Shown: positions 261-61,255 of the stretch, in pieces | Position numbering within the stretch: position 1 is the stretch's first letter | How the letters are laid out: each line of letters starts with the position of its first letter | Assembly: GCA_000708835.1 (NCBI GenBank) | Contig: DF237336.1 | Location: 1-64,000, forward strand | From: Klebsormidium nitens | Lineage: Eukaryota > Plantae > Klebsormidiophyceae | DNA length: 64,000 nt | Reading direction: 5' to 3' | Program-made: the position numbers and the translations under genes | The notes under the pieces: generated by a model | What the model was told of the DNA's origin: nothing | The model's database searches: none | The model's input: only the letters and a program-made list of their open reading frames with translations

Positions 261-486
261 GGCACAAGAGCCTCAACCGACAAAGGGGCCCACATGCAAC
301 GTCCTTGCACGGCTCACGTTGAACTCCAACTTCCAAGTGACGGCAGGCTGCAGCAGGGTCTAGACTCTAGAGCCTGAGGAACCCTGTCTTGCACGCCAGA
401 TTCGGTGGCCAGAAGATATTACTCGAAGACACAGGGACTCAGCTAGGAGAGAGGGTAGAGGTGAGCGCCTCGTGGGGCGGTTTGCC

Positions 487-3221
487 ATGGAACGTATGGA
501 GAGCTTTCAGGAGCTGGACGCGGATGCTGTGTCTGATTATGCTCGCAGGTTTGCGGAGAGTGAGCAATTGCAACATGCGGAGGAGGAAGATGATTGGGTT
601 GACCTGCGCAGTATGGCAGCAGGGGGCAGTGGGGACGAATCCAGCCGAGATGACATGTACATGGCCAATGCCAGCCCTCGCACAGATACAAGTGAGGACT
701 TCCTGGAGGAAGATGCCCAAAGGATGCAGACGGGAAACGAGGACCAACACATGGAGGGAAGGGATGGCCACTCCAGGCAGCGGCAGGGAGAAGGAGACAT
801 GGATGTAGGGGCGCACCAAGACAAGAAGGGGCTGCCAACAGCGGGGTCAGCCTCGGACAGCGCCCTGCCTTTGTCACCTGAAGAGCAGGCTGCGCAGAAG
901 GGAAGAATGGAGCATGGTTGTTCCCACTACCGGCGGCGGTGTCGCCTGCGTGCCCCTTGCTGCAATGAAGTCTTTACGTGCCGGCACTGCCACAATGAGG
1001 CCAAGAACGCGGGGGAGGAGGACCCCAAGCTGCGGCATGACTTGCCGCGCCACGAAGTCACCTCTGTGGTGTGCATGCTCTGCAACATGGAGCAGCCTGT
1101 GTCGCAACGCTGCAGGAGCTGCGGGGTCACATTCGGGGAATACTTCTGCGACAAGTGCAGGTGAGCACCGCGTCATTTCAACCTGGCGCCCCACTGTGGC
1201 CGCCAGGGGCCAGCCCACAATCCAGCTGCTGCTCTTGGATTTATCATGCCTGTATCGAACAACACTTGACACAGATGTGCAGTGTGCCAGCACTAGATAT
1301 TGTGGGCCAAGGGAGGAGCAAAGGGCCAATCGGGAGCAACCCTAGCTTAATTTGTTGTTTGCAATTCCCCGTTTCGTGACGTTGGTGCCTTTTTGGAATT
1401 GCACATACTGCTGCATTGTTGACTTGAGACAGCACATTGAACCACATCTTGCTCTTTCCAGGTTCTTTGACGATGACATTTCCAAGGAACAGTGAGTTGC
1501 GCCCCCTCGCCCGGCCAGCTCCAGTTATGGACTGGACACTAGGAATCGGCCGGAAACACCCGCAAGCTCTCGACCTCTCGGTGCCCAGATTGTCTGCAAC
1601 ACATGGTGGCCCTGCTTCTAGTCTCGAAGATTAGTCTCGTGATTTGTGTAAACTGAATCAGGGATGCTGTGAGTGTGCCCTCAGCCCTGCTGCCCCGCTG
1701 CCTGTCTGTGAGCGTGCCTGCTGAGCGCCGTGCTGCGTGCCAGGTTCCACTGCAACGATTGCGGCATCTGCCGCATTGGCGGCCGCGACAAGTTCTTCCA
1801 CTGCGCCACGTGCGAATGCTGCTACGCCATGTCCCTTCAGGACAAGCACAAGTGCGTCGAGAAGTCGATGCACCACAACTGCCCCGTCTGCTTTGAGGTG
1901 ACCCCCCAGCTCTGGCTCTTTGCGCGCCCTTCCGCTGCGCCCCTCATGAAGTCTGGCTGCCTTCGTACCCGTCAGCCCTGCATCTCAATCTTCTTCTTGC
2001 TAGCATTGCGCGAAGCGCGGTCTGCATCCTCTGAGCCGCGCGCTGACTGGCTGCTCTGCTCTGCTCCTTCCTCTGCTGCGCAGTACCTGTTTGACAGCGT
2101 GCACAGCACCAGCGTCATGGTCTGTGGCCACACCGCCCACCACGCCTGCCTCGAGGAGATGCGCCAGCACGGCCAGTGAGTGCGCCGCCCCCCTTGACAC
2201 ACCCTCATGCACCAGCAGGTGCTTGCCTGGCCGCCTCAATCAGCTTGCTATTTGCAGCGTGGTTCAGGGCACTGCCCAGCTTGCTCGGATGTGTAGCTTG
2301 TCTTGTACCGAGTACGGGCCAAGGCTATCCGTTAGCCGCCCCATTCCGTGGCCAAGTGCGTTGCTGAGGTGTGAGCGCACTTCTCCCCGCAGCCACCACC
2401 ACGCGCTCCAGCATGCTTGCGGGCCACAGGGGCTGCCCAGCTGCACCCCTGCTTGTGTGCATCCGCGCTCGTCCTCTTGATGCAGCCTCCGCTGAGGGTT
2501 GCTGCCTGCTCGGCGTTGCAGGTACAACTGCCCCATCTGCTCCAAGAGCCTGTACGACATGGCCCCCGTGTGGGCGCAGCTGGACGCTGAGGTGGAGGCC
2601 ACGCCCATGCCGCCAGAGTACCGCGACAAGCTGGTGAGGGAGCGGCGAGGCAGCACCCTAGTGGGACAGCGCTGGGCCAAAACAGCCTCTGTACACTGGA
2701 CTGGCAGTTAGTGAATGTTGCAAATGAAATTCCTAGCATGTTTGCAAAGGCAGCGGGTATTCACCTCAGGTTTATGTGCGTACCCCTTGGATAGGCGCGG
2801 CCACCGTTCAAAGTGGTCAAAAACAGCATCAGAAGATTGAGCCGGAAGAAGCTCCGGGAATCACGGTTCAGTGTTCCAAGCAAGCTTCCTGCTTCAAACA
2901 TGCTTTGGCATTCTCATATGTCTCGTAACAGTCTGTTCTGTATCATAGTGGCCTTGCTAATAACGTGCATAAATCATTCGGTTGCATTAGCCTGCGCTTG
3001 ATCTCCTTCCTGCTTTTCAGGCCGTTGTTTAGCCTCTTGCGCGGCCTGCGTTGCAGGTGTGGATCTTGTGCAACGACTGTGGGGGTATCAACGAGGTGCG
3101 CTTCCACCTCGTGGCGCAAAAGTGCCCCGTGATTGACTGTGGCTCTTACAACACGCGGCAGACGCGCGCCAGTGGGAACGCCGCCACTGCAGCTGCCGCA
3201 GGGCCCAGCCACACGGGATAG
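487..3221 (+). CDS. RCHY1: CHY zinc finger / RING-H2 / zinc-ribbon E3 ubiquitin ligase (Pirh2/RCHY1, plant MIEL1/CHYR-like), about 408 aa
   Basis: Exons 487-1160, 1462-1491, 1744-1897, 2084-2175, 2522-2633, 3057-3221, all GT-AG and in frame. Motifs [77 protein letters not shown]. Confidence 0.93.
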
Positions 3222-5673: not shown

Positions 5674-8600
5674 TCAAGTGGCCGCCCCTTGCAGCGCTTT
5701 CCGGTCCTTTCCTGCAGCTGCACCGTCATGCCGCCGTGCAAACTTTAGCTTGGACTTCATTTCGCCGGTGACGGTGGTGGTGATCTCGGTGTCCACCACC
5801 ACCGTGTCGTCCTCGCCCACCTCCCCCCGCAGGATCAGCCGCGCAATCTCGTTCTCGATCTGCCGTTGGATCACACGCTGCACGAACCCACACCCTCGAG
5901 CATCAGCCACGTGCATCTTGTCATGGTGGCCACAGGCAAGCCGCCCTGATACGGACCGAAAGGAGCAACACGCTGCCAGCAACACAGGGCGACTCCAGAG
6001 GCGGATAGATCACGCTATGGACGATGAACACGCTCTGGCACGTCACACTGTCCGCTCCTACTCTGCGACCCGCTGTGCGCTCGGCTCACCTTGACAGGGC
6101 GGGCCCCGTAGGCGGGGTCGTAACCCATGACGCCCAGCAGCTTGATCGCGCTCTCTGTCACCTCAATCTTGATCTTACGGTCGGCCACCCGCTGCCGCAC
6201 GCGGTCCAACTGCACACAAGAGGCAACGGAACAATCAGCACACGGGCGGAGCACCTCGATCGGGGCTGGACATACCAGGACGGCAGGCAGGCAAAGAAAG
6301 CAGCGAACAGGTGTTGGAGTCAGTCGTGGCAGGCCAGGGCGTGACGCAGCAGAGGAGGGCGGTGCGCGTGACGGGGCCTGACCTGCAGCCGCACGATCGA
6401 CTCGATCTGGTCGGGTGCGAGCTGCTGGAAGACGATGTACTCGTCGACGCGGTTGATGAACTCGGGGCGGAAGTGCGCGCGCGCAGCGTCCAGCACGCGG
6501 TCGCGCATGGCCTCGTAGACGGTCTCTGCGCTGCCTAGCGCGGCGTCGAGGCCGGCGGTGATGTACTGGCTGCCGATGTTGGACGTCATGATGAGCACCG
6601 TGTTGTTGAAGTTGACCACGCGGCCCTGGCTGTCCGTCACGCGCCCGTCGTCCAAAATCTGCAGCACGCCAACATGCGCGCCACCCACGTCAGCACGGGT
6701 AAAGAGATCGAGGCAACAGGACAAGCAGAGGCCGCGGCGCTCACGCGCGACAGCATGTCAGTACCGAAACAGCAGGGTACCGCCAGGTGTGGCAGCGTGC
6801 AGCACCTTCGAACGTTGTGCAGGTTCGAAGAAAGAGGACCCGAACCGTTGCCGCGCCTGGTGTGCGGTGGGCTGACCTGCAGGAAGATGTTGAAGACGTC
6901 GGCATGCGCTTTCTCGACCTCGTCAAAGAGCACGACGGAGTAGGGCCGCCGGCGCACGGCCTCCGTCAGCTGGCCGCCCTCCTCGAAGCCGACGTAGCCG
7001 GGGGGCGCGCCCACCAGCCGGCTCACGCTGTGCTTCTCCATGTACCTGCAAGCAAGCGGCAGCGCGGGGGGTCAGCCACGGAAGACGAGCAATCAACGGG
7101 CACAGGAACGAGCCGGAACAGCTCCTCAAGGAAGCGGGCAATATGCAACGGCATGACCAGTGAAAGCAGGCACCAAGGGGGGTGGGTCCTCGATAGAAGC
7201 CTGGCAAGCTCCACTTTCCTCGACATTGCCCACGTTCGAACTGCCCATGTTCGAAGTGCATCATAAGGTCTGTCATGCGAGCGCAGTCACCGGGCGGCCT
7301 GCGCAGCGGTGGGGTTGCGTGCGGGCGCTCACTCGCTCATGTCGATCCTGACGAGGGCTTCCTCGGTATTGAAGAGGTAGGTGGCGAGCGCCTTGGCGAG
7401 CTCGGTCTTGCCGACGCCGGTGGGCCCCATGAACATGAGGCTGGCAATGGGCTTGTTGGGGTCGGACAGGCCCGCGCGGCTGCGCTGGATGGCCTCCGCC
7501 ACGGCCGTCACCGCCACGTCCTGCCCCACCACGCGCTTGTGCAGCTCCACGTCCAGCTGCAGCAGCTTCTCGCGCTCACTCTCCTGCACGCGCGCACAGC
7601 AGCCAACGACAATGCGTCAGCACACAGACTAACAACAGGCGTGCTCCAAGTGGCAGGAAACTTGGATGACGAGGACCATAATGAACGGCTTTGCATCATC
7701 TTGAACCTCGTCATCGCGACTGGCAAACAAACCAATTGCACTGCCACTCTCGGGCTCTGCCTCATCTGGATATACGCCCAGCAACCTTGCACAAACGCCA
7801 CGAAGCTCCCCGCACAGATCGTCCAGATATGAGTTGCGGGACCCAGCAGAAGCGATTATTTGCTCCGCGTCAGCTCTGCCTTACCTGCAGCTTGGAGATG
7901 GGGATGCCGGTCCAGCGCGACACAATCTCCGCAATGTCCGCCTCCGTCACCTCCTCGCGCAGCATGGACGCGCCGCTGGACTGGTACGCCGCCAGCGCGG
8001 CCTCCGCGCCGTCCAGCTGCTTCTGCAGCGTGATCAGGCTGCCGTACTTGAGCTCCGCGGCGCGATTCAGGTCGTAGTCGCGCTCGCTCTGCTGGATCTC
8101 CACGTTGACGCGGTCCATCTCCTCCTTGATGCTCTGGATGCGCGTCATCACGCCCTTCTCGTGCTCCCACTGCTCCGTCAGCTCGCGCTGCCGCCCCTTG
8201 AGCGTCGTCAGCTCGTCGTCCAGCCGCGCCAGCCGCTCCTTGCTCGCGCGGTCCGTGTCGTTCTTCACGCTCAGCTTCTCCATCTCCAGCTTGATCACGG
8301 AGCGGTCCACCTCGTCCAGCGCCGTCGGCTTGCTCGTAATCTCCATCTTGAGCTTGGCCGCGCTCTCGTCCACCAGGTCGATCGCCTTGTCCGGCAGGAA
8401 GCGGTCGCTGATGTACCGGTCCGCCAGCAGCGCGGCCGCGACCAGCGCGGTGTCCGCGATGCGCACGCCGTGGTGCAGCTCGTAGCGCTCGCGCAGCCCG
8501 CGCAGGATGGACACCGTGTCCTCCACGCTCGGCTGGTCCACGTACACCTGCTGGAAGCGGCGCTCCAGCGCGGGGTCCTTCTCGATGTACTTGCGGTACT

Positions 8601-10980
8601 CGTCCAGCGTCGTGGCGCCGATGCACCGCAGCTCGCCGCGCCCCAGCATCGGTTTCAGCAGGTTGCTCGCGTCCAGCGCGCCCGCGCTCGCGCCGGCCCC
8701 GACCACCGTGTGGATCTCGTCGATGAACAGGATGACGCTGCCGTCGCTGTCGGTGACCTCCTTGAGCACGGCCTTGAGCCGGTCCTCGAACTCGCCGCGG
8801 AACTTGGCCCCCGCAATCAGCGCGCCCATGTCCAGGCTGATCAGCCGCCGCTCCATGAGCGCCTGCGGAACGTCGCCCGCCACAATGCGCTGCGCCAGGC
8901 CCTCGCTGATGGCCGTCTTGCCCACGCCCGGCTCGCCGATGAGCACCGGGTTGTTCTTGGTGCGCCGGCTCAGGATCTGGATGCAGCGCCGGATCTCGTC
9001 GTCCCGCCCAATCACGGGGTCCAGCTTGCCCTCACGTGCCGCCTGCGTCAGGTCCTTGCCGTACTTCTCCAGCGCCTCGTACTTGCCCTCAGGGTCCTGC
9101 CGGACAGCACGGAACACGTCAGCCAGCGAGACTGAGAGCAGCCAAAAGGCTTTGATAACCTTTGATGTACTGGTGTTCGTCGAAAAGCCCCCATCTGTGC
9201 TTTGGCGAAGCTCATCGCGGTTAGATGATTTGTACGTCTTGAGAATCCAATCTGCACGTGCTAACACCTCTCGTCAGTAAGTGGTTCTACATTCTGAGAA
9301 CTTGAGAAACACGATTATTCTGCATCTGGAGTAGACATGGCAATCCCTTCTCTATCTCCAATAAGGCTCCAAAACTCCAAAACTCCGGACTCCAAAACTA
9401 AAGGGGTACATGAACGGATCGCATGTCTACCCAAAATCCCGCCCTGAGTGACGCCTGTAGCCCACAGACACGCCACTAGGAAGTCTGAGTATCCTCAAAC
9501 GCCAGTTTCCGGGTCACTGCCTTCTCCTACCCTGAGCGTGCTACCGCCTGCCGCGCAAGCGCCCCTCACCTGGTCCGTGACGTTCTGCTTGCCTCGCACT
9601 GCTGCGATGGCCTTGTCAAGCGTCTGGCGCGTAAGCTTGAAGTCCTTGAGCAGCTGCTGGCCAAAGCGCTTGTCGTCCACAAACCCCAGCAGCAGGTGCT
9701 CCACGCTCACAAAGCTGTCGCCCATGCCCTTCTTGCTGCTGCGCGCACGGTCAATCAGCGCCTCCAGGTCCCGCCCCAGCATGGACCCGTACTCCACGCC
9801 GCTCGCCTGCAACGCCCAATCAAACCAGCCCTCGCTCAATACGGACCCAAAAAAATCCGTGGAAACAAGTAGAACAGTAGAGATATACTTGGAAACAGGA
9901 AAAGCAAAAGACAATTCATTCTACGCGGTAAAGTGGTGTTTCCCGAACAAAAGACAATGGGCCTCACTTCCTCTTTTAAACCTTTGTATTTTGTTAATTC
10001 CAAACTTTCAACATTTTGGCAGAACGTAAACGCTTTTAGCGTATGGTGGGGTGAATCGCCTATTTCACAATTCTGGTGAGTGTGATCGAGAAGGAGGCAG
10101 GAGAAACACAGGAAGTCAGCAAAGTGGCATAAACTGAAAACACGCAGTCAACCAGACCAGAGACTGTTACTCCTATGCCCATCGTTATGTGAATAGTCAC
10201 TGTCGCCAACGAAGGCACTTCGTATCTGCGCAGACTCCTTGCTGGGCCATGCATCTTGTGCCCAGAGGCGCAGGCGGCCTACCTTGGGCTGGCGCTGGAT
10301 GAAGCGGTCGGTGGCCTGCAGCAGCGCGGTGTTGTCGGCCTCGGCCTTGCTGAAGATCCTGCGCGCCAGGCCGTTGCGCTGCTCCAGGAGGGCCTTCATC
10401 AGGTGCTCCGTCTCCACAATCTGGTGCTTGTTCTCCTTGGCCACGTCCGGCGCCGCCAGCACCGCCTGCCACGCCATGTCCGTGAACTCCCCCTGCGATA
10501 TCTGCGCAACCAACAAACACCAAATCAGAGTCTTCTTTGATGGATACTACGCCATTGGCGTCAATTCGCATCATTTCAATCGCATCTATGGAAACAAATC
10601 TAGCGGCTCCACGGATGTATGCCGAAAGTGTCCGAACGGTGGCTCAAAAAGGATGCCGCTTCTGGCTGCTTCCAGCTTACCTTGCCTCCTCCTCCTGCTG
10701 CAGCTGCCGCTCGCGCCGGTGTTCCGCGAAAGTGGCGCGGACGACCCGCCGGAGAAAACCCTCCTGCCGGCTGCCACGCTAGTGCCGCATGCTGACTGGG
10801 AGAGGGACAGGCGCGCAAGCCAGCATGAGTTGGAATTAGCGGAGTGCTTCTATTGAATCGTAGCCTGCCTAATTGGATTGATGCCGCTTGGCCGCCCTGC
10901 TTGGTGCGTGGCTGGGGCGCGGAGCAGGCAATGCTGGGGGGGGCCAGGTGCCCTAGGTGCAGCACGGTAGAGGAGGCCAT
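5674..10980 (-). CDS. CLPB3: Organellar (probably plastid) ClpB/Hsp100 chaperone, about 995 aa
   Basis: Exons 10980-10681, 10501-10283, 9806-9570, 9096-7885, 7583-7333, 7045-6877, 6658-6383, 6209-6090, 5877-5674. Walker A motifs GEPGVGKT and GPTGVGKT, Walker B LFIDEIH and LFDEVEKAH, a coiled-coil middle domain, and an Ala/Ser/Arg-rich transit-peptide-like exon 1. Plastid versus mitochondrial targeting is inferred. Confidence 0.96.
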
Positions 10981-18198: not shown

Positions 18199-19350
18199 CT
18201 AGCTCAACAACACGGGGGATCTTGTTGGCACCAAGCCAAATGAAAGAGCTCTTTCCAGCTCCAAAATTACCCGAATATCATCACCTGATCTCACAAGGGG
18301 TGGCAAGAAAAGCCACTCAGCTGTGACAAAGCAAAATATCAATGTCAGCAGAATCTTGATCGCTTTGGGAGGCTGGGGCATCTTGGGATGTGACCGCCGT
18401 ACCCACCGTTCAACGCAAAGGGCAACTCCGTGCAGCAGAAAGAAAGCTGTCACTTCTCCAGAGACGGTGCGCGTTATGTACCAGAATATAAGCTCGTGCA
18501 TTATGCCCGAAACTGCAAATGCTGCTAGCACGGACACCAGTCGTTGCTCGAGGGTCATGAAATTGAGACGCTCTCTAGGGGCATCCTTGAAACCGTCTTG
18601 CTTTGAAACACTCCCATTTGGCGCTCCTCCTCTAGCTCTGCCATTTGCTTGTAACATCAGATCCCGTTTTGCCGATCTCTCCAGAAGGGGCTCATAGACA
18701 GACTCGCGTAGAAGTGCGCTGACGGTCAAGTTCCATCGTCGAGCCCAGAAATCGGACACAGATGCTGATAAGAATGGGCGATCAAAGTCAGGCAGCAACT
18801 CCACCCCCAGGACCCAGGATGTGAGCGCACCAGACAGGTTCATGACGGTGGAGATGAAGAGGTACAGATTCAGGTACCAAAAGAAATGATACACCTGGGC
18901 GTGCAGGACCTCCCCATTGCCATTGATTTGTAATGTGACCAGCAGGATTCCCACTTTCAGCAAGCTCTGGAGGAATAGATTCCAAGTTGTATCTTTCTGC
19001 TTTTGGAGCCCTTTGCTTTTTGACGACCTCAGATGGATGGGGCAGCACAACACGGCGCAGAACTGGAACAAGCTCTGATCAACTTTCGGATCTACTAATG
19101 GACCCCTCCCAAATGCTAGCATGATCAGCTTGAATGAAGATAGCCAGCTGACGATGCAGCCTACCACCGCGGTCGGCAGGACGGCGATCCGAACGTCATA
19201 GACTAGAATGGGGACACTCAGATAGAAGGCCACCACTGGAGCCGCCAGCAGGCAACGAAGGTAGAGCAGCTTCTGAGGCTTGATGAAGGCGAATGAGTAC
19301 AGGGAAGTCACGAGTAGACAGGCAAAGAGGCTCAGGTTGGGGCCAGCCAT
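18199..19350 (-). CDS. MBOAT-family long-chain-alcohol O-fatty-acyltransferase (wax synthase / sterol acyltransferase-like), intronless, 383 aa
   Basis: Single ORF from ATG 19350 with multiple hydrophobic helices. Motifs WLSSFKL, FDRPFLSASVSDFWARRWNL, FAVSGIMHELIFWY, FFLLHG. Confidence 0.9.
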   Translation of the reverse strand: MAGPNLSLFACLLVTSLYSFAFIKPQKLLYLRCLLAAPVVAFYLSVPILVYDVRIAVLPTAVVGCIVSWLSSFKLIMLAFGRGPLVDPKVDQSLFQFCAVLCCPIHLRSSKSKGLQKQKDTTWNLFLQSLLKVGILLVTLQINGNGEVLHAQVYHFFWYLNLYLFISTVMNLSGALTSWVLGVELLPDFDRPFLSASVSDFWARRWNLTVSALLRESVYEPLLERSAKRDLMLQANGRARGGAPNGSVSKQDGFKDAPRERLNFMTLEQRLVSVLAAFAVSGIMHELIFWYITRTVSGEVTAFFLLHGVALCVERWVRRSHPKMPQPPKAIKILLTLIFCFVTAEWLFLPPLVRSGDDIRVILELERALSFGLVPTRSPVLLS

Positions 19351-19527
19351 GACACGCCGCCTTCTTAAGCTCACAAACCGCCCTGGGCGAGCTACGAGTA
19401 CCCATTAATAATAATAACTCTCGAGTTCTTTGATGCCAACGAACCAGCTTCTCCAGCTGAGCTTGCGCAGTGCTCGTGATTGAACGCTTGCAATGGCATT
19501 GCTAGCTCCATGATGCACCACATGAAA

Positions 19528-26085: not shown

Positions 26086-29000
26086 CTATCGCTCAGCAGC
26101 GGTCACGAGCACCACGTTATCCCCGCGGACAAACACCTGCATTGAAACCAATCGAACATGATCGAGCCACGTGACCGACTTTGGCTTGTCGAGATGTCGA
26201 CAGACCACAATAGCCTACATCACGATAGTTCATGTGACTGATCAGAAAACCAAGATGTTCAGGTGGTAGGTGCGTGCGTTCTGGGACGAGCCAACCTGCT
26301 CAAATCTTGCCGGGACGAGAACTCGTCCCAATACTAGTACGGGCTGGAGCGAACGAAACGCTCCACTCTATGACGGCCATCTCTGCGCCTCAACCAGGAC
26401 ACAAGCAATTTGCAGTTAATGGGCGCAAGTATATCCAGGCCCAAGCTTCAGGCTCGCACTGCCATGCCGCAGGTTATTATTAACGAGCGGGCATTTTCTA
26501 GGGGCATTATTTTCTCTTTCCAGCCCCCTTCCTGTTCTCGAAGACCATCTGCTCCGCGTCCTTGCCACGCACTAGCTGCCCCCCGCCGTTCTCCTCAGAA
26601 TTTACATGCCGCGTCCTGCACCCTCCTGCTCCCCTGCTCCCCTCTCTCCCCGCCTCACCTGGTTGAGGTGCCGCTTCCTGTGCTCCAGCTTGGGGAACAG
26701 CCGCTCCTCCTGCACGCGCGCCCCGCCGCCCGCTGCGCCGCTGCCGCGGCCCGCCCCGGCCTTCACCCACACCGTGCGCGGGGCCTCCGTCAACACTGCG
26801 CGCAGGCAGGAGGGCGGTCATTGGAGAAGCCAGCCACAAAGTGCACGGCTCCTCGCGGAGCCGAGACAAATGCAAGTAGCTCTGCCGGCAGTGACGTGCA
26901 GAGGCCGTTCGGTCGAGAGCACCCGGTTGTTGGGCGGGAGAGGGTAGGGCAGTCAGCCGCGTACCTGAGTAGCTCTCCTCGACGTCCTGCAGCACCTGCA
27001 CACGCGGCCCGGACCAAATGTCAAGAGCCAAGCAGATTAAGGAGCGGAAGACGCCCGAAGTCTCCTGAAGCATGTCGAGCGACTAGAGAGTATCCTGGGG
27101 GGGAACTGCAATACCCTTTGTACAAACAAAGCAGGCAAACCGCCCAGAAAAGGCCACACCAGGAGTTTGAGTGCAGCAAGCCCGGGGGCGTATTTGGGGG
27201 CGGGGGACCGACGCACCAGGTTGCAGAACTTGTCGAAGGCCTTGAGGAAGCCAGTGGCGGTGCCGCGCAGGCCGCGCCGGTGCCGCGTGTACACCTGCAC
27301 CGGCCGCCGCTGCGCGTAGCACCGCTGCAGCAAAGCCAGGGGGCCCTCGCCGCACGAGGCTGGCAGGAGGCAGGGGGGACCGGCGATCAGCGGGTGATTC
27401 AGAGAACTCCGATTCAGGGACTAACATCGCCTGCTCAGGCAGCAATCCCCTCGTTCGTTTCCGNNNNNNNNNNNNNNNNNNNNNNNNNNNNNNNNNNNNN
27501 NNNNNNNNNNNNNNNNNNNNNNNNNNNNNNNNNNNNNNNNNNNNNNNNNNNNNNNNNNNNNNNNNNNNNNNNNNNNNNNNNNNNNNNNNNNNNNNNNNNN
27601 NNNNNNNNNNNNNNNNNNNNNNNNNNNNNNNNNNNNNNNNNNNNNNNNNNNNNNNNNNNNNNNNNNNNNNNNNNNNNNNNNNNNNNNNNNNNNNNNNNNN
27701 NNNNNNNNNNNNNNNNNNNNNNNNNNNNNNNNNNNNNNNNNNNNNNNNNNNNNNNNNNNNNNNNNNNNNNNNNNNNNNNNNNNNNNNNNNNNNNNNNNNN
27801 NNNNNNNNNNNNNNNNNNNNNNNNNNNNNNNNNNNNNNNNNNNNNNNNNNNNNNNNNNNNNNNNNNNNNNNNNNNNNNNNNNNNNNNNNNNNNNNNNNNN
27901 NNNNNNNNNNNNNNNNNNNNNNNNNNNNNNNNNNNNNNNNNNNNNNNNNNNNNNNNNNNNNNNNNNNNNNNNNNNNNNNNNNNNNNNNNNNNNNNNNNNN
28001 NNNNNNNNNNNNNNNNNNNNNNNNNNNNNNNNNGGAAGGGCAGCAGCCCAGTGACCGTCAAATGCATCAGGGCAGAATGAGTCGACAACAGCCATCATCC
28101 CGAAGTTTAAAGTTTGGAGGGGATCCTGCGCCGTCCAAAAGCACAGCCATTTCTGGGTTGCCCGAATCGGCTTCAGTGGCTCACCTGCAATCTTGTCCAG
28201 GATCTTTTCCTTGCCGCGCTCCTTCTCTGCTGCTGCCGCCAGCCGAACACTCTTGTGCGCCTGCCACCAATGTACGAGCAGCTTGATAAACAGGTCTCGG
28301 GGCGGGAAGTGACCGACCTCAAAGTAACCAAATATGCCTCAAAGGATCCCATCAGAACATGCACTGGACGAGTGCCACGTGGCAGCCCGTAAAGAGAAAT
28401 AACTGCGGTGTTGAGCAAGGATGCACCTTTCTGGGCTGGCTCTCTCCCACCAACGCAGCACCGAGCGGCCAGGTCGCCTTCCAGAGAGGAGGCTGGTCGG
28501 TGGCTCACCTTGGCCCGTTGCTGCGCCGCAATGGATTCCTGAGAGCGGGGCACCCGGGGCGCCACATTGGCCAGAGACTCAGGAACAACCTGCAGCATGG
28601 ACGCAGCGAGCGCAAGCTGAGCCACATGTAACAAAAAGTGATCCATTTACATTAGAAGCCAGCCTGGCATTCAGAGAGCATGTAGGCGGACTCAAAGGCG
28701 TTGTCCAGAGTAGGCTGCACCTCTCAGAGCTCTGGTGAACAGACCGAACTTCCTCGCCGGCCAACTCAGATGAGGCGCGTGCTCTTTAACTCTGGACTGT
28801 TCCAGATGGAGGGGCCCGCTGCCTACAGTCGTTCAGTAGCTTACCTCGGGGATGATCCTGCGGCACTTGTTGAGGTTGTCCAGCGGCTGCACGCGCGGCG
28901 CGGGCGGCTGCAGGCCCACCGTGTACAGCGCACACAGCGGGTCAAACAGCTCCTGCCACACCAGGCCACGCACCGGTCAGCATAATGTGGCCGTCATGGG

Positions 29001-31476: not shown

Positions 31477-34400
31477 TCAAAACGCCCAGGTGCTCCTCAG
31501 CATGAACGCAGGCCCCGTCACCCGCTGCCCTTCTTTGATCATCACTGCTCCCGGTGTCAGCGTGAAGCCCTTGCCGGTGGTCAGATTCAAGAACGCCTCC
31601 ATTTGCGTCTGCGACCCCTTGGGTTCCGCCTTCCCCACCCTGAGGTCGGCTGGCCGCACCCACGGTTCCGGCTGCGTGGACCCCACTGACAGCCCCCAGC
31701 CCACCCCGGGGGAGTCCGGCACGCCCGACAGCGTCACCCCCCACTGCACGCCACGCTGAGGCCCCCGGCCCGAGGAGGTCTGGTCCATGTGGGCCCACCC
31801 CGAGAAGGTGGCCAGCTCGCCCGCCGCCACAGCCCCGGCAAAGCCGTACGACCGCAGCGAGTGGCCGTGCAGTCGAGGCAGCCCCACACCTGCAAAGTGG
31901 ACAAACGCGTTCAGAGCCAACTTCTGGATTGGTGTAAATCAAGGCAGAAGTGCAACCACAAGTCAGGACCGGATAGGCCACCAGAAACCGAAGCTTTGTC
32001 CCTGCGACACTGCACGAAAGGAAACAACGGCAAGTCGTCCCCCCAGCCCGCATTGCGACGGCTATCCAAACAAACTCTCAGACCGCTGGCTGGTCTTGTG
32101 TTGCGGGTGGCATCCTCACCGGCCCAGGTGTCCCCCGTGCCGTTCATGCTGGAGGACGACGACTCGTAGCTGTCGCGCATCGACTCGCCGTTGGTAGCAG
32201 GAGCCGGGGATGACGCGCGGATGCGCGGCACCAGGAGAGGGCCCAGCTCGCTCCAATGCAGGCCTGCACAGGGAAGGGAAGGCGCTGCTGAGGATGTGCT
32301 GAGGATTGGATTGCCGATGTCGACCTTGCCTCGAGTCGACGAATAAAACTGGACGACGAACCTGACTCGCCGACCGCAACGGGCCAAGTCGACCCTCCAA
32401 ACCTACAAGCTCATATTAGCAACGGTCTTTCCGGTCAGATTGTCCTAGATAATCCATCGTATCCTTTTCCCCTCACCTGTCCCAGACGGCAGGCTGGGCG
32501 CCGGCCAGTGCCGGTTGAGTGCCACCACAGCGAGCGCGCACTCTGGCGCGGGCCGAAGCGTGACCTGCCCCAGCGTTGCGTGGCACAGCGGCTCCTCCGC
32601 GCTGCTGCCGGGGCCCCACCCGCTCACGAAGTGCCCCACCGTAAGCCAGCTCCAGTCGTTGGTCCGTGCCGTGGCCGCCACCGCCGCCCCCATGCACCGA
32701 CGGTGCAGCGCGCTCCCCGCTGACGTCAGCGCCGTCAGGCCCTGCCCCTCCAGCGGGTTGAGCGCCTCCGCCATGTCAGCGCCCTGCGCGCCCGTGGCCG
32801 CCACGCGCAGGCACAGCCAATCCGTCAGCTGCGTCCGGTACATGACTTTCTTCACCGCCAGCACGCTCCCCCCCGCCGCGCCGGCCCCGTGCGAGTCCCC
32901 CGCCGCAAGCTGCGTCATGAGCAGGTCTGTGGTGCGGAACGGCGTCTCCAGGTTGATGCGCACGTCGGTGCCGGTGCGCAGCGCAGCGTGGTCGAGGCTG
33001 CGCTTGGTGGGGCGGCTCTGGTCCTCGTCCAGCGCCAGCAGGCCCACCCCAATGCTGACCTCGCCGCTGACCTTGGTCTTGCCGGACAGGTGGGACGCGA
33101 ATGCGGGGAGGGCGGCCTTGCCGCGAGTGTGGCGCAGGCCCGTGTGGAACTCGAGCTTGCTCAAGCGGTCCCGCATCTCCAGAAGCTGCGCAAATGTCTC
33201 CCGCTGCAAGGAGGAGGATACTCTGCTGTTAGACAAGCCAACTGCATGCGCGCAGTGGTTTGCAAAGTTGCAAGATTACGTGGTAAAGTCTTATAATCTA
33301 AGTGAATTGCAAAAAGCCCCATACTCCTGAAGTACAGCTTCACCTGAGAACCTACATATCTGACGATTGCCATGCGCTTGTAACAATTGTAACGCGAAAA
33401 CAAATAGGGTGTCTTGGTGTCTTACGAAAATGGTACAGGAAGGTGTGTAATCCCTTACTTGCAATCGCCGCAGCGCATTGATATCTCCTCGCATGGCCAG
33501 GGAGTCGTCACCCTGTTGTGTTGTTAGCAGCTCAATCACTCTCTGTGCAGTGCTCTGCGCATCAAGCAGTTCTAGATCTGGTGCAGGCTGGGCCCCTGTT
33601 CGCCGTCCAAGCAAAGCTCCAAAGACCCCTGCGCAAACCGACACGTTGAGATTGTTATGACGCTGGTCCTTTGGTCCTCAACGAACTTGAGAATTGTGCA
33701 AAACGATGACCGCTTCACCTGCATTTGATCTGCACCGGTCACCGCAGTCGCCCCTCCTGGAAAGCATTGCTGAAATGCACGGTAAAGCAAATGGATTGAG
33801 AGTACTTTGTGCTTAGACATGCACGGCAGAAGTAGGGCCGCAGCCGCTCACCTGAGACCCAATTCTCCACAGCATGGGCAGGTGAGGAGCCTCTCCGCTC
33901 CAGCGGTTCCTCCTCCACCAGCGGCTCGTCTTTGGGGGCATCTGACACCAGCTTCAAAGTTCGTTTCTCCGGCGCAGGAGATGCTGAGGCAGGGGGAACA
34001 ACTCTCACATCTACATTCTCCACAAAGCCCGCCGGAAAGTCGGACCCTTCAGTCCCCTCGCTCACAATATCTACATCATCCGCCCCATCTTCTCCGATTG
34101 CTTCCTCTGCCTCAGCATCTTTTCTCGCTGAAACTTCCACGAAGTTGGGTGGTAAGTCAGAGTATACTCTCTTTGGTCTCAACTTTGATTGTCTCGGCAC
34201 CGCTGCCTCGCTCTCTCCCTCTATTTCCTTCTCTTTCCCTGTGCTCTTTTCTTCTACGTCAAAGTCTCCGTCAATGTCCTCTTCCCCCTCTTCCCCCTCG
34301 TCCTCATCACCGTCCTTCCCTTTTGGCTCGTATCCCCTGCCATGAACCCCGCCAATGTGTGCGAACGCAGGCTGCATTTTGGCCCAGCTCCCCACCCCCT

Positions 34401-35085
34401 CCTCCTCCTCTTCCTCCTCGTCTTCTTCCTGCTCCGCCACGCCCCCTTGTCCCTTGCCTGCCTCCCCGTTGTCCCCCGAGCTATCGTCCCTCCACCTCCA
34501 TACAGGGCCACCCCATCCATCCCCTCCTGACGGTCCTCCTCCCCCACCCAATGCCTCCAGTTTCTCTTTCAGCGCCAGCACAGTTGCATTCAAGATTGCA
34601 GTGAGTGAGACAGTGCGCAGCAATTGCTGCCGAGACCCCGCCTGGGGGGCCAGGCAGGGCCACCACCGCTTGCCATGGGTGTGGCCAGTGTGTCTGCCAA
34701 ACATGCTGCACTGAATAAGCAAGGCCAGTGCTTGGTGCTCAGCAGATCTGCCACAGCCTCCATTCTTAGCCCCTGCCCGCGCCCGGCATCTTTGAAATTG
34801 GTCACTTTCACCGACATTCTGAACCAGAGTCACAAAAGTCCTTGCGAAACCAGGTCTGCCTTCTGATTTTGACTCTGGCTGATTGGTAGATTTGCTTCCG
34901 GCGGGACTGCTCAGCTTCCATGCTTGTCCTCCATGCAGAACAAGTGCAGGGCTACAGCACCTGTATGAACGGCCATTGCAAGAACTTTCGCTGGTCCCAA
35001 TTTGAGTGCCAGAAGCAGGCGCATGTTGGCTCTTAGTCAATGCCGCAGCTGGCTGCTGCAAGGTCAGAGTATGAGCAGTCTCCAT
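31477..35085 (-). CDS. Uncharacterised beta-barrel membrane protein resembling cyanobacterial SomA/OprB-type porins, with an acidic N-terminal region, about 895 aa
   Basis: Exons 35085-33852 (start uncertain), 33628-33459, 33203-32477, 32263-32120, 31889-31477, all GT-AG and in frame. Coiled coil ALRRLQRETFAQLLEMRDRLSKLE, then KTKVSGEV, VRINLETPFRTTDLLMTQLAAG, alternating amphipathic strands, and C-terminus QMEAFLNLTTGKGFTLTPG...FMLRSTWAF ending in Phe. Confidence 0.75.
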
Positions 35086-35868: not shown

Positions 35869-38800
35869 ATGGCCAATGGATCCGCCTGCCGCTCTCTTTC
35901 TGCTGTCGGATCCTTCATTGGCCAAACTGAAAGCTACACTTGCCAAGCAAACAGGCGCTCGTCGCTCGCATTCGCATTCCACTCGAAGAATCTCCAAGCA
36001 GTCTCCAGTGGAAGGTATTCGGAAGCCAATGCAGCCACTCTGCTGCCATCTTTGAACTCGTCTTTCAACGGCATCAGCAGCATTGCTCTGCACGCCACCC
36101 AGCGGCCGTGCACACCTGCTTCTCAGGCCAGACAAAGAGGTGGCGCCGTCACTGCCAGTGCTTCCAGGAAGGTACTGCTTGTCAACACACACGCGGGAGG
36201 CCATGCGGTGATTGGCTTCTGGCTGGCCAAGCAACTGCAGGAGGACGGCCATAAAGTGACGTTCTTCATTGCAGGTGAACAGAGGAATCCTACTGCAATT
36301 TGTGGAGCAATGTAGAGGTCCCGCAACCTAAGTCAATTCCAGCGCTTGCCAACTGCTCCGCACGACAGAAGATGTCCACTCACCCAGTCGGTGCTCTACT
36401 TTTTTGGATCATGGAAAAACTAGGGTCTATCCTGGCGCCAAGCTGCCAACTCCATGCCATGCTTGTTTTCATGCAGGAGATGAGTCATCCGACAAGAACA
36501 AGAAGGAACCCTTCACCAAGCTGGAGGCAAGTTCCTCCATGACCACTGAATACTTGTCAATGTATGAGTTGCGACTCAACCATGTCTGCTTGGCAAGTGG
36601 TGGACCTTGAGAGGCGGAATGTGGCCTCATACGATATAGCAAGATCCAGGCGCGCTAGAGACTAAGTATATAGCAAGACAAACAAGTCACAACTCTCTTA
36701 CCCTTGTTGTCCAAGGCCTAACATTGCTCTTCAATATTAACATTTCTGCAACGACAATCTGGTTGACAAAGGCACATCCTGATAATGGACACTCAAGACC
36801 GCTGCTGTTATCTCTGCAGGAGTTGCGCTCAGCTGGCGTGAAAGTAGTGTGGGGCTCTCCTGCTAAAGTTGGCGGCGCTGTTGAGGGTAGCTTTGACACA
36901 GTCATCGACAACAATGGCAAGGACCTGGAGTCTGTCCAGTAAGTATGCTCTGGATGATGCGGGACCGCTGTGATCAAAGATTCTCGCCACTTTTGTAGAT
37001 CATGATGTTTTCCTATTTGAGGCTTCGCACAACCTGTTACCTTGTAATGGGTGTATACTTGTGTCAGCCAATGCTCAGGGTTGTGAACTGCTTGCCGGGA
37101 GCAACCCGCCTCAGACGTGGCGCTTGCTGTGCAGGCCTGTGGCGGAGTGGGCTCTGAGCAACGGCGCGTCGCAGTTCCTGTTTGTGAGCAGCGCAGGAAT
37201 CTACAAGAACACCGAGGAGCCTCCTCATGTTGAGGGGGTAAGACTCTTTCTTGTCTCGATTTACTTTCAAGCTGGCCCTTAGAGGCCACAATGTCATCGT
37301 TCATGGCCAATTCCTGCCAAAACCAGTTGTGGGTTGAGTTGCTTCCCTCACTTTCGCAGCCACGTGATTTGAAACTTTGATGGAAGTACACGAGTCACAA
37401 TCTCACTTTGAGTATTGCGTCCCAAGTCTTCACCGAACCTCGCACAAAAAACGGGATTGATAGAAGGAGCATGTCAGGGAGTCAAAAGCCAAGCCCAGCA
37501 GTCTCAGCCTTCCGAACAAACTCCTGCACAGACTCCCAAAATACTTGGCAGTTGGCTTGTGAGTTTGTCCATTCTAGATACCCATTGTCCATAGCAGATC
37601 CTCGACTCCCACCTTGTTTCGAGTCCACACTGTTGGGGTGCCCTTTGTGACATGCGGCTGCGCGGTGGCCGTGCGTGCAGGACCCGGTGAAGGCGGACGC
37701 GGGCCACGTGCAGGTGGAGAAGTACCTGAACGAGGCCGGCTTCTCAAGCGGGGCCGCCTTCTTCCGGCCGCAGTACATCACTGGCAAGTACAACAACAAG
37801 GACTGCGAGGAGTGGTTCTTCGACAGTGAGTGCGCCCACACCCACCCTGTATCAAGTCCTGACATAAGCCGGCAGTCAGAAATTGTGGAAGCTTTCTAAG
37901 GCGCAGCCATAATGCAAGAAGACTGTGAACAGGACCAGACGAGGACATTCCAAACGTGCCATGGAAGCGTGTTGCGTCCTTGACGACTGAGGTCTCTGCT
38001 GACGATCTGCTGCCTTCAATGCTCTTCGAGTTGGCCTGCTGATCTGGCTCGACCAGTTTAAGGAAGGATTTCGAGGACGACCTCATGCATCTCATCAGTG
38101 CCCAGTGAGTATCTAATAGATGGGTTGGCCTAAGGCTGCCACAAGCCATTTGGAGGGGCTGATGCTGTTGATCCAACTCGTTTGGACCTCGTGCCTCAAT
38201 CAAGACTCGATATAGCCGCAGGCGAGGCGTGGCATCAACTCCCTTGTGAATCTCCACTGTGCGATACTGCAATTTCTGCCGCTAGTTTATCACCAGCTCG
38301 AAGCTGTTGGTACCATTCACTGTTCGGACCATTCACCAGCTCGAAGCTGCAGAGGCACGTGCTAATAGTCGGGAATGGAACTGCATTCAGCGTCTCTCAG
38401 CGCGCGCACGCCGGTTGCTTGGTGCAGGGATTGCGCGTGACCGCGCTGTGCCTATCCCTGGGTCGGGGATGCAGATCACCAACATCACCCCGGTCACGGA
38501 CCTGGCGGCCATTCTGGCGGCGGCGGTGAACCAGCCGGAGAAGGCGGCGGGGCAGGTGTTCAACCTGGTTGGGGACAGGGGGGTCACCTTCGACGGGTGA
38601 GGCCACTCGCAGGCTGGGGCTGGAAACAAGGCAGAGCGGATTGGTGCTAACGCACAACTTCGTGTAAAAGCTTCTTCCTGGAGTCCTGGTTACCTGGATT
38701 CTCGAGTCTGACCCCGGGGGCCCGCATCAAAAAGGGGTCTCTAAGAAGCATTTACCGACGAGCGTGGTCAGCTTCGCACGTCACGGTGTAACCCTCCAAC

Positions 38801-60424: not shown

Positions 60425-61255
60425 TCAATCAAAGAACCCCGTCTGCTTGAGCACGGCATTCCTGACCTTCTTCGCATCCCGCCCCTTCAGCGTCCTCCCT
60501 GCGCCTTCGTACACTGAAAACACCACCCCGCTCTCCGCATTCTGCCGAGCAATCAGCTCGTGGGGAGGCACAATCCTTCCCAGCTCCTCATCATCTGAGT
60601 CATTATCATCCTTGACCTTTCCATTCTCGTCCCGCTCTGCCAGCCTTCCCCACGCAGGGACATTCACAGGCGCCGACTGCTGCACCATTGGCTGGGAATG
60701 GTCCCCCCTGGTGGGGATCATGCGCATCCCCGTGCTTGGCTGGCCAAAAATACGCTGCGGAGAGGCGTTTGCGTAGCTGCGGAAGGGGGAAAGCAGGGTC
60801 GTCCTGTGCTTGCTAACCGTATTCTCGTCGTTCCAGGAAGCCAATCCCAGGTCCCGTTCTCGTGCTCCCATCCACCGCGGCTGTCTAGAAACCAATCGCA
60901 TGCCGGTCCGCTCATCTTTTGAAAAGTTCAGCCCCTTGGCAACGGGCCCTTCCTGCTGCCAATCCCGCGCCTCGGTCGCCCAAACATCTTCCTCCCTCAA
61001 CTCCCCCCCACTAGAAGACTCCGCTGGACCGTCCATGTCAGAGGCCCCTGACACGCTGGACGACGCCGAGTGGATCCCAACTGGTGCGCCTCCACCCAAC
61101 AGCTTTTCCATCCTGGACGAGGCATAGGATTCTAGACCATTCCCAAAGTACGTGGATGAAGAGGACGCGCCTTTCCTCGAATGCAGGGCAGTCATTACCG
61201 CAGACCCCGCCACCCCCAAGGAGTTCCCAGGCATGGCCAACGCAGATGCCGACAT
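60425..61255 (-). CDS. Senescence regulator S40 (DUF584) family protein, intronless, 276 aa
   Basis: Motifs ELREEDVW, QSAPVNVPAW, VPPHELIAR, and FSVYEGAGRTLKGRDAKKVRNAVLKQTGFFD* at the C-terminus. Confidence 0.9.
   Translation of the reverse strand: MSASALAMPGNSLGVAGSAVMTALHSRKGASSSSTYFGNGLESYASSRMEKLLGGGAPVGIHSASSSVSGASDMDGPAESSSGGELREEDVWATEARDWQQEGPVAKGLNFSKDERTGMRLVSRQPRWMGARERDLGLASWNDENTVSKHRTTLLSPFRSYANASPQRIFGQPSTGMRMIPTRGDHSQPMVQQSAPVNVPAWGRLAERDENGKVKDDNDSDDEELGRIVPPHELIARQNAESGVVFSVYEGAGRTLKGRDAKKVRNAVLKQTGFFD

Follow-up and report, generated by a model that had tools for sequence, protein, structure and literature searches.

Algal orthologue of the Arabidopsis chloroplast-envelope protein UP1 as a distant homologue of cyanobacterial SLH-OprB porins

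How the outer membrane of a cyanobacterium was converted into the outer envelope of the plastid is an open question. A gene family that addresses it is represented in a 64,000-nucleotide stretch of DNA from Klebsormidium nitens (contig DF237336.1, positions 1 to 64,000, of assembly GCA_000708835.1; hereafter the window), where a spliced nuclear gene occupies positions 31477-33628 of the minus strand. By sequence comparison, this gene encodes an algal orthologue of Arabidopsis UP1 (At1g11320). There are solid grounds, again from sequence, for regarding its product as a genuine though distant homologue of the cyanobacterial SLH-OprB porins, with the homology extending over the stalk helix, the barrel and the C-terminal strand. 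We consider it probable that the gene is a nuclear UP1 orthologue derived from a cyanobacterial porin, that its product has kept the stalk, the barrel and the last strand while losing the SLH domain, and that this product acts as a small-solute pore of the outer envelope.

The kinship itself has been noted before. Imai et al. (2011; PMC3045335) flagged At1g11320 as a possible new β-barrel protein, found SomB as its homologue using HHomp with 100% probability, and favoured a chloroplast location. The original prediction for this locus, made from the letters of the window, had spoken of an unrecognised plastid channel; this was overstated, since both the SomB homology and the likely chloroplast β-barrel were published in that study. 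The protein is named UP1 in the work of Bouchnak et al. (2019; PMC6601204), in which a fusion to green fluorescent protein was located 'unambiguously' in the chloroplast envelope, with an enrichment factor of 8.0, and a paper from 2026 employed UP1 as an envelope marker, with FAST fusions (PMC13263057). Proteomics and the fusions to green fluorescent protein and FAST thereby place the Arabidopsis orthologue in the chloroplast envelope, in keeping with the plastid-envelope location predicted for the algal protein. The link to SomB, published once and in passing, has since been overlooked. Later papers state that such porins were lost in plants, TCDB family 1.B.23 listed bacterial phyla only (PMC4827864), UP1 is missing from the oemiR collection of outer-envelope proteins, and the main text of a 2025 paper on how the proteins of the outer envelope evolved makes no mention of it (10.1101/2025.06.18.660430). 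Furthermore, UniProt and NCBI attach the name 'GDSL esterase/lipase' to At1g11320 (P0086) and to some of its orthologues, for example that of Tasmannia (P0029), and a preprint on cold-acclimation proteomics treated the protein as a lipid enzyme on the basis of that database label (10.1101/813725). No functional study of UP1 was found in the literature. What is new here is an algal member of an already known, functionally uncharacterized family.

The conserved part of the gene is divided into four exons, designated A to D, which are separated by GT..AG introns in compatible phases in the window sequence:

33459..33628, minus strand: exon A, pre-stalk helix and first half of the stalk motif (...INALRRLQ)
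32477..33203, minus strand: exon B, remainder of the stalk helix (RETFAQLLEMRDRLSKLE) and barrel β-strands 1-9
32120..32263, minus strand: exon C, conserved LHWSELGPLLVPRIR motif, then a Ser-rich loop of low confidence joining strands 9 and 10
31477..31889, minus strand: exon D, β-strands 10-16, C-terminal strand ...FMLRSTWAF and TGA stop
31480..31506, minus strand: C-terminal strand FMLRSTWAF resembling a β-signal, in which hydrophobic residues alternate and the final residue is Phe

The peptide strings and limits given in the original prediction were all found on this strand, the limits coinciding with the start of exon A and the end of the stop codon: position 33628 directly follows the TTTGCGCAG acceptor of exon A, and the TGA ends at 31477. 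Exon A is followed by a GTAAGG donor, with the intron running from 33458, and exon B starts at 33203 after the acceptor CCTTGCAG, such that NALRRLQ|RETFAQLL... straddles the exon A/B junction. The spliced core comprises 483 amino acids with no internal stops and ends in ...FMLRSTWAF*.

The reality of the locus was assessed by comparison with a sister genome, represented by a contig of Logan run SRR23617307 (locus L009). Exons A-D align to it without gaps at 89-95% identity and differ mostly at third codon positions. The identities and the substitutions at the first/second/third positions are 89% and 3/1/14 for exon A, 94.6% and 6/3/30 for exon B, 91.7% and 3/0/9 for exon C, and 91.8% and 9/3/22 for exon D. 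The introns between these exons are 59-65% identical and contain many gaps that are not multiples of three. Gap-free exons with third-position changes, together with diverged and gapped introns, therefore identify the locus as a spliced gene under purifying selection.

The gene probably begins further upstream, with an exon that encodes an acidic N-terminal extension:

33852..35085, minus strand: probable first coding exon (N-terminal extension), an open reading frame that is open in both genomes, with a conserved donor
33629..33851, minus strand: probable intron between the extension exon and exon A, with donor and acceptor conserved in L009

The open reading frame upstream of exon A comprises 448 codons (35085-33742), the first 411 of which end at a CAG|GTGAGC donor (33852/33851). 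It is uninterrupted over 411 codons in the window and 425 in L009, with 80% DNA identity, and the gaps between the two genomes are all multiples of three (3, 9, 27 and 3). The splice from 33852 to 33628 is in frame, and both the CAG|GTGAGC donor and the exon A acceptor are kept in L009, where the interior of the intron is 43-69% identical and has gaps of 9 and 17 nucleotides. These features point to a probable first coding exon of 411 codons and a likely full product of about 895 amino acids, which is comparable to the 740-990 amino acids of homologues in streptophyte algae and ferns. An alternative 51-nucleotide exon with an ATG (33769-33719) was dropped, as neither its GT donor nor its length is kept in L009.

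The extension is of low complexity, with acidic runs, and consists of 17% Asp/Glu and 37% Ser/Gly/Pro/Ala; codons 1 to about 170 show no third-position bias. Pfam gave no match on its reading frame, including none to SLH, and alignment of the 411 residues to the cyanobacterial porin profile using hhalign gave a probability of 0.07%. No significant sequence similarity was detected between this extension and those of other lineages, and the extension evolves fast. The length that precedes the L[KR]RLQRE motif is about 150-880 amino acids in streptophyte algae, mosses, ferns and Taxus, 0-170 in members of the chlorophyte clade, and about 10-45 in angiosperms, Ginkgo, Welwitschia and one Riccia copy. 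Plastid peptidoglycan has been reported to persist in streptophyte algae, bryophytes and ferns, and the long forms roughly coincide with the lineages said to retain it.

The assignment to the UP1 family is based on searches, alignment and phylogeny. Among 1.84 billion representative proteins, a phmmer search with exon B found 81 relatives at E<=1e-3, including 14 at E<=1e-30. Those that carry a species name are all from Viridiplantae and range from Myrmecia and Mesostigma to Arabidopsis: algae (Chara, Closterium, Spirogloea, Mesotaenium, Mesostigma and the chlorophyte Myrmecia), mosses, a liverwort, Selaginella, ferns, gymnosperms and angiosperms (Capsella, Elaeis, Coptis, Tasmannia, and Arabidopsis At1g11320/Q9SXB7, which is UP1). 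The land-plant relatives mentioned in the original prediction therefore exist, At1g11320 among them. None of the 81 matches came from red algae or glaucophytes, whose genomes received no dedicated profile search, and a search with the family profile, capped at 8000 candidates, returned eukaryotic members only. In BLASTP alignments, residues 7-483 of the core match residues 460-947 of a 947-residue homologue (P0002) at E 1e-95 and 36.5% identity, and exon D alone matches the C-terminus of P0002 at E 2e-21. The core also matches the members from Capsella and the Arabidopsis cluster at E 1e-27 and 5e-26, respectively, with about 25-27% identity.

In plants and cyanobacteria alike, no part of the protein is better conserved than the stalk motif L[KR]RLQRE.F..L...R.RL..LE, and the exon C motif is common to the streptophyte homologues (LHWSEMGPL..., with the family form LHWSE.GPL). 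A maximum-likelihood tree of the family mirrors the species tree, with the plant clan split off at 100% support. The window protein, placed within the family at 100% support, diverges later than the chlorophytes and Mesostigma but earlier than Chara, the Zygnematophyceae and the land plants, a position that corresponds to a Klebsormidium-like grade of streptophyte algae. It aligns end to end within the family that includes Arabidopsis UP1 and carries the L[KR]RLQRE stalk motif and the C-terminal R-S-x-W-x-hydrophobic strand of that family. The window protein and UP1 differ in their N-terminal parts, with a probable acidic extension of about 410 residues in the window protein and about 40 residues before the motif in Arabidopsis, and in their last residue, which is Phe in the window protein and Leu in Arabidopsis. 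No relevant Pfam domain was found in 50 family members and five further homologues, even at E<=1. Two members, from Chara braunii (P0015; 1331 amino acids) and Riccia (P0084; 1139 amino acids), resemble fusions. The Chara protein, in which reverse-transcriptase RNase H domains precede the porin module, is probably an annotation chimera.

The relationship to porins was apparent at several levels. Exon B matches the NCBIfam profile NF033921 (por_somb, 'iron uptake porin') at E 5.3e-8, as do 39 of the 50 family members, with a best value of E 1.7e-12. All of these matches are in one register, with the stalk helix of the family at about 62-78 of the profile and the match reaching about position 319 of 485, and all of them score far under the 100-bit cut-off of the profile. 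When a Mesostigma member was compared with 72,556 plasmids by tblastn (E<=10), the 14 records that matched were all cyanobacterial (best E 2e-9), and 11 of them carry the annotation iron uptake porin or OprB. For profile comparison, eight plasmid-borne and 22 chromosomal cyanobacterial porins were fetched from Nostocales and Oscillatoriales-type sources; all four that were scanned contain Pfam SLH plus OprB. Alignment of the plant family to the plasmid-borne set using hhalign gave a probability of 99.8% (E 1.4e-27, 376 columns), and the independent chromosomal set gave 99.85% (E 7.4e-31, 379 columns). The match spans from the helix directly after the SLH domain through the final residue. As single sequences, exon B (95.9%, E 5.7e-9) and exon D (79.9%, E 1.4e-5) also matched the porin profile at the expected collinear positions, the latter at the C-terminal end of the porins. 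The bacterial matches obtained for the family are cyanobacterial only.

The identity between the family and the cyanobacterial porins is about 19-28%. The stalk of the window protein, NALRRLQRETFAQLLEMRDRLSKLE, is aligned by hhalign to the cyanobacterial stalk motif LQRLQEEF..ELATLRGRVDALE, and its ...FMLRSTWAF end is collinear with the cyanobacterial ...GTLRTTFxF up to the last residue. The cyanobacterial consensus also contains TTTKL.GE, RVRL.....TSFTGKD.L.TRL.A.N, H.E..YRY....NI.ITPG and LRTTF.F, in agreement with the motifs listed in the original prediction. The proposed porin homology is supported by the NF033921 match, the profile alignments and the exclusively cyanobacterial plasmid matches. 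The proposed loss of the SLH domain is likewise supported, by the absence of a Pfam SLH match on any exon or on the upstream reading frame and by the negligible similarity of the extension to the porin profile. The window protein thus shares the stalk motif, the 16-strand barrel and a C-terminal ...LR(S/T)T(W/F)xF strand with the cyanobacterial SLH-OprB porins (Slr1841, Slr1908 and SomA/SomB; NF033921; TCDB 1.B.23). In contrast to them, it has neither a signal peptide nor an SLH domain, is encoded by a nuclear gene with spliceosomal introns, belongs to a family that adds one long loop between strands 9 and 10, and falls under the Pfam OprB and NF033921 thresholds.

The fold was predicted with AlphaFold2 for residues 460-947 of P0002, using a 49-sequence alignment that included the window exons. 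The model, with a mean predicted local distance difference test score (pLDDT) of 79.9 and a predicted template-modelling score of 0.71, consists of two N-terminal helices followed by 16 β-strands. The second helix (41-77) is the stalk. Exon A aligns to helices 3-31 and 41-77, all 16 strands have aligned counterparts in the window protein, and the region that matches exon C has a pLDDT of <50. A Foldseek search of the PDB with this model found 259 matches at E<=1e-3. Almost all of the 50 best are general porins with 16 strands, among them chitoporin (5mdo, E 6.5e-9), OmpC/OmpF, OmpM1 and OprB (4gey, E 3e-8). When the PDB was searched by sequence, neither exon B nor the family profile returned a significant match; the top one was NanC at E 0.38. 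A model of a cyanobacterial porin (pLDDT 76.0) contains helices in the SLH region, a long helix (125-163) and 16 strands, and its best PDB neighbours are those of the plant-family model. On the basis of the sequence-profile alignment, the stalk helix and the 16 strands correspond one to one between the two models, with plant helix 41-77 mapping to cyanobacterial helix 125-160. The models support the prediction that the window protein folds as a 16-strand porin barrel after a stalk helix, consistent with the multi-stranded barrel that the original prediction had expected, with porins as the nearest structures.

Two known porins are instructive in comparison. OmpM1 of Veillonella parvula (PDB 8bys/8byt), a porin of diderm Firmicutes with SLH domain, stalk and barrel and a top Foldseek match for both models, shares the 16-strand barrel after a stalk helix; unlike the window protein, it has an SLH domain and binds peptidoglycan, and no match to it was found at the sequence level. 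OprB of Pseudomonas putida (4gey) has a 16-strand barrel, which Foldseek matched to the plant-family model at E 3e-8 and to the cyanobacterial model at E 2.7e-13, but is a carbohydrate-selective proteobacterial porin without the stalk helix. A barrel of the Omp85/Toc75 type (POTRA plus Bac_surface_Ag) was considered and rejected: there was no Pfam match, and the 16 strands and the Foldseek neighbours are those of general porins.

These results are consistent with the following mechanism. The protein has lost both its signal peptide and the SLH domain that binds peptidoglycan, and the probable acidic low-complexity extension of about 410 residues stands in their place. The barrel would be recognized via its last strand by the Omp85 machinery of the plastid and inserted into the outer envelope. 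By analogy with SLH porins, the stalk helix would join three barrels on the intermembrane-space side; OmpM1 is a trimeric porin held by a triple coiled-coil stalk (PMC10628300). The pore may pass small solutes across the outer envelope, and by the same analogy these would most likely be inorganic ions, as for porins of the Slr1841 type, which have been described as inorganic-ion channels (10.1101/2020.03.24.006684). The 'metal channel' of the original prediction rests solely on the name of the NCBIfam profile.

Several observations weigh against the reading of the gene as a porin-derived outer-envelope pore. Pfam OprB (PF04966), with a gathering score of 22.9 bits, did not match the window exons or the family members even at E<=1, and the NF033921 score of exon B (31.9 bits) is far under the family cut-off of 100 bits. 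A profile match of the kind proposed in the original prediction was thus obtained with por_somb, under its threshold, and failed with OprB. The protein is therefore a distant derivative rather than an ordinary member of the porin family. The modelled structure is that of a homologue, P0002:460-947, which is 36.5% identical to the window protein, and its long loop at residues 305-347 is unmodelled. At the C-terminus, the terminal residue is Phe in all of the fetched cyanobacterial porins, the chlorophyte members, Mesostigma and the window protein; however, it is replaced, mostly by Leu or Met, in later streptophytes and most land plants. The terminal Phe of the original prediction is accordingly present and aligned with the final Phe of the porins, but is not general in the family, and the shift may mark altered recognition of the last strand. 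Imai et al. (2011; PMC3045335) judged that the Arabidopsis C-terminus is no genuine β-signal of the mitochondrial type. In addition, the evidence for the probable upstream exon and 5' end is comparative throughout, and no conductance, substrate, oligomer or topology experiment was found in the literature for any member of the family.

Other explanations of the same data differ in what they dispute. The barrel could serve as a membrane anchor and not as a pore, in which case the protein would mainly tether or scaffold the envelope by means of its conserved stalk and its extension. It would thereby carry on what SLH porins do as tethers, with a new partner such as the inner envelope, residual plastid peptidoglycan or a cytosolic component. 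We regard this as unlikely, and tethering or scaffolding remains a serious rival or additional function because conservation peaks in the stalk motif on both the plant and the cyanobacterial sides. SLH porins are primarily tethers of the outer membrane (10.1101/2020.03.24.006684; PMC10628300), and streptophyte algae, mosses and ferns have long extensions, those of angiosperms and most chlorophyte members being short. However, the extension is fast-evolving and unconserved between lineages, angiosperm proteins retain the barrel with almost no extension, and OmpM1 combines tethering with channel function, which makes the two roles compatible. A more far-reaching proposal combines the two: UP1 proteins would be the plastid remnant of the dominant cyanobacterial porin and tether (Slr1841 type), described as not conserved in plants, and would still form trimeric small-ion channels in the outer envelope; in streptophyte algae, bryophytes and ferns, the long acidic extension would replace SLH as the intermembrane-space tether. 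This proposal is speculative and we consider it doubtful. As to ancestry, the gene may have reached the ancestor of the Viridiplantae by a separate horizontal transfer from a cyanobacterium and not from the plastid ancestor. The restriction of the named relatives to Viridiplantae, with no red-algal or glaucophyte protein among the 81 matches, would fit such an event, as would the single very long branch between the plant and cyanobacterial clans, on which a donor is unplaceable. Against this, the red-algal and glaucophyte genomes had no dedicated profile search, the cyanobacterial sample (Nostocales and Oscillatoriales-type) lacks early-branching lineages, the family occurs in chlorophytes as well as streptophytes, and the plastid-envelope location in Arabidopsis fits endosymbiotic transfer with loss elsewhere. 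We regard a separate transfer as unlikely.

Two further explanations are very improbable. That the protein is a GDSL esterase/lipase is suggested by the database name only, taken at face value by one preprint (10.1101/813725). No Pfam lipase match was obtained at E<=1 in the window exons, in the Arabidopsis protein (P0086) or in the 50 family members, and the stalk helix and 16-strand barrel cover the whole of the conserved region. It is equally hard to believe that the amphipathic strands are merely alike by convergence, with no homology to cyanobacterial porins, even though Pfam OprB finds no match and the identity to these porins is just about 19-28%. Such an origin would have to account for E values between 1e-27 and 7e-31 across about 380 collinear columns that include the non-barrel stalk and shared motifs, for a pairwise tblastn value of E 2e-9 with matches in the plasmid collection confined to cyanobacterial genera, and for the one-to-one correspondence of strands between independent models.

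We thus return to descent from a cyanobacterial porin as the probable reading. Because the family spans the chlorophyte/streptophyte split, it was present in the ancestor of the Viridiplantae. An attempt to name the cyanobacterial donor from the tree was given up, as the two clans are joined by one very long branch. Owing to this single branch and to a sample without early-branching cyanobacteria, the same tree fits endosymbiotic transfer followed by losses and a later horizontal transfer, and the present sequences cannot distinguish between them. The plastid channels OEP21, OEP24, OEP37 and OEP40 are also outer-membrane β-barrel solute carriers, but have no traceable cyanobacterial ancestor (10.1101/2025.06.18.660430), and the glaucophyte proteins CppS and CppF are outer-membrane solute barrels of non-cyanobacterial origin (10.1101/2020.03.24.006684). 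In the UP1 family, unlike in either of these groups, a cyanobacterial ancestor can be traced. The strong statistics show that a derivative of the main cyanobacterial porin, stripped of its wall anchor, persists across the green algae and the land plants, and the family is a testable candidate for an ancestral ion channel or tether of the outer envelope. The name 'GDSL esterase/lipase' is misleading. The finding is tempered by the earlier publication of the SomB link and of the envelope location in Arabidopsis, and the locus itself is an ordinary orthologue.

Other genes and reading frames were recognized in the window:

472-1164, plus strand: open reading frame with a zf-CHY domain (Pfam, E 1.3e-20)
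7870-9267, minus strand: large exon with AAA (E 3.7e-12) and AAA_lid_9 (E 5.9e-33) domains (Pfam), as in chaperones of the ClpB/Hsp100 type
18199-19374, minus strand: open reading frame with an MBOAT_2 domain (Pfam, E 8e-12)
26410-28080, plus strand: open reading frame of 556 amino acids with no Pfam match
35869-38600, plus strand: divergent neighbour of several exons, the first with a Rossmann-like motif
60425-61255, minus strand: open reading frame of 276 amino acids with a Senescence_reg domain (Pfam PF04520, E 7e-37)

The product of the divergent neighbour at 35869-38600 resembles chloroplast proteins of the CSP41 type, a likeness that Pfam did not confirm, as three of its exon pieces gave no significant match. 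Senescence_reg is a plant-specific family, and its presence in the window is consistent with a genome of the green lineage. Positions 26513-27370 are 79% identical to positions 7688-8559 of the sister contig L009, and because of this identity the region is probably coding on one strand or the other.

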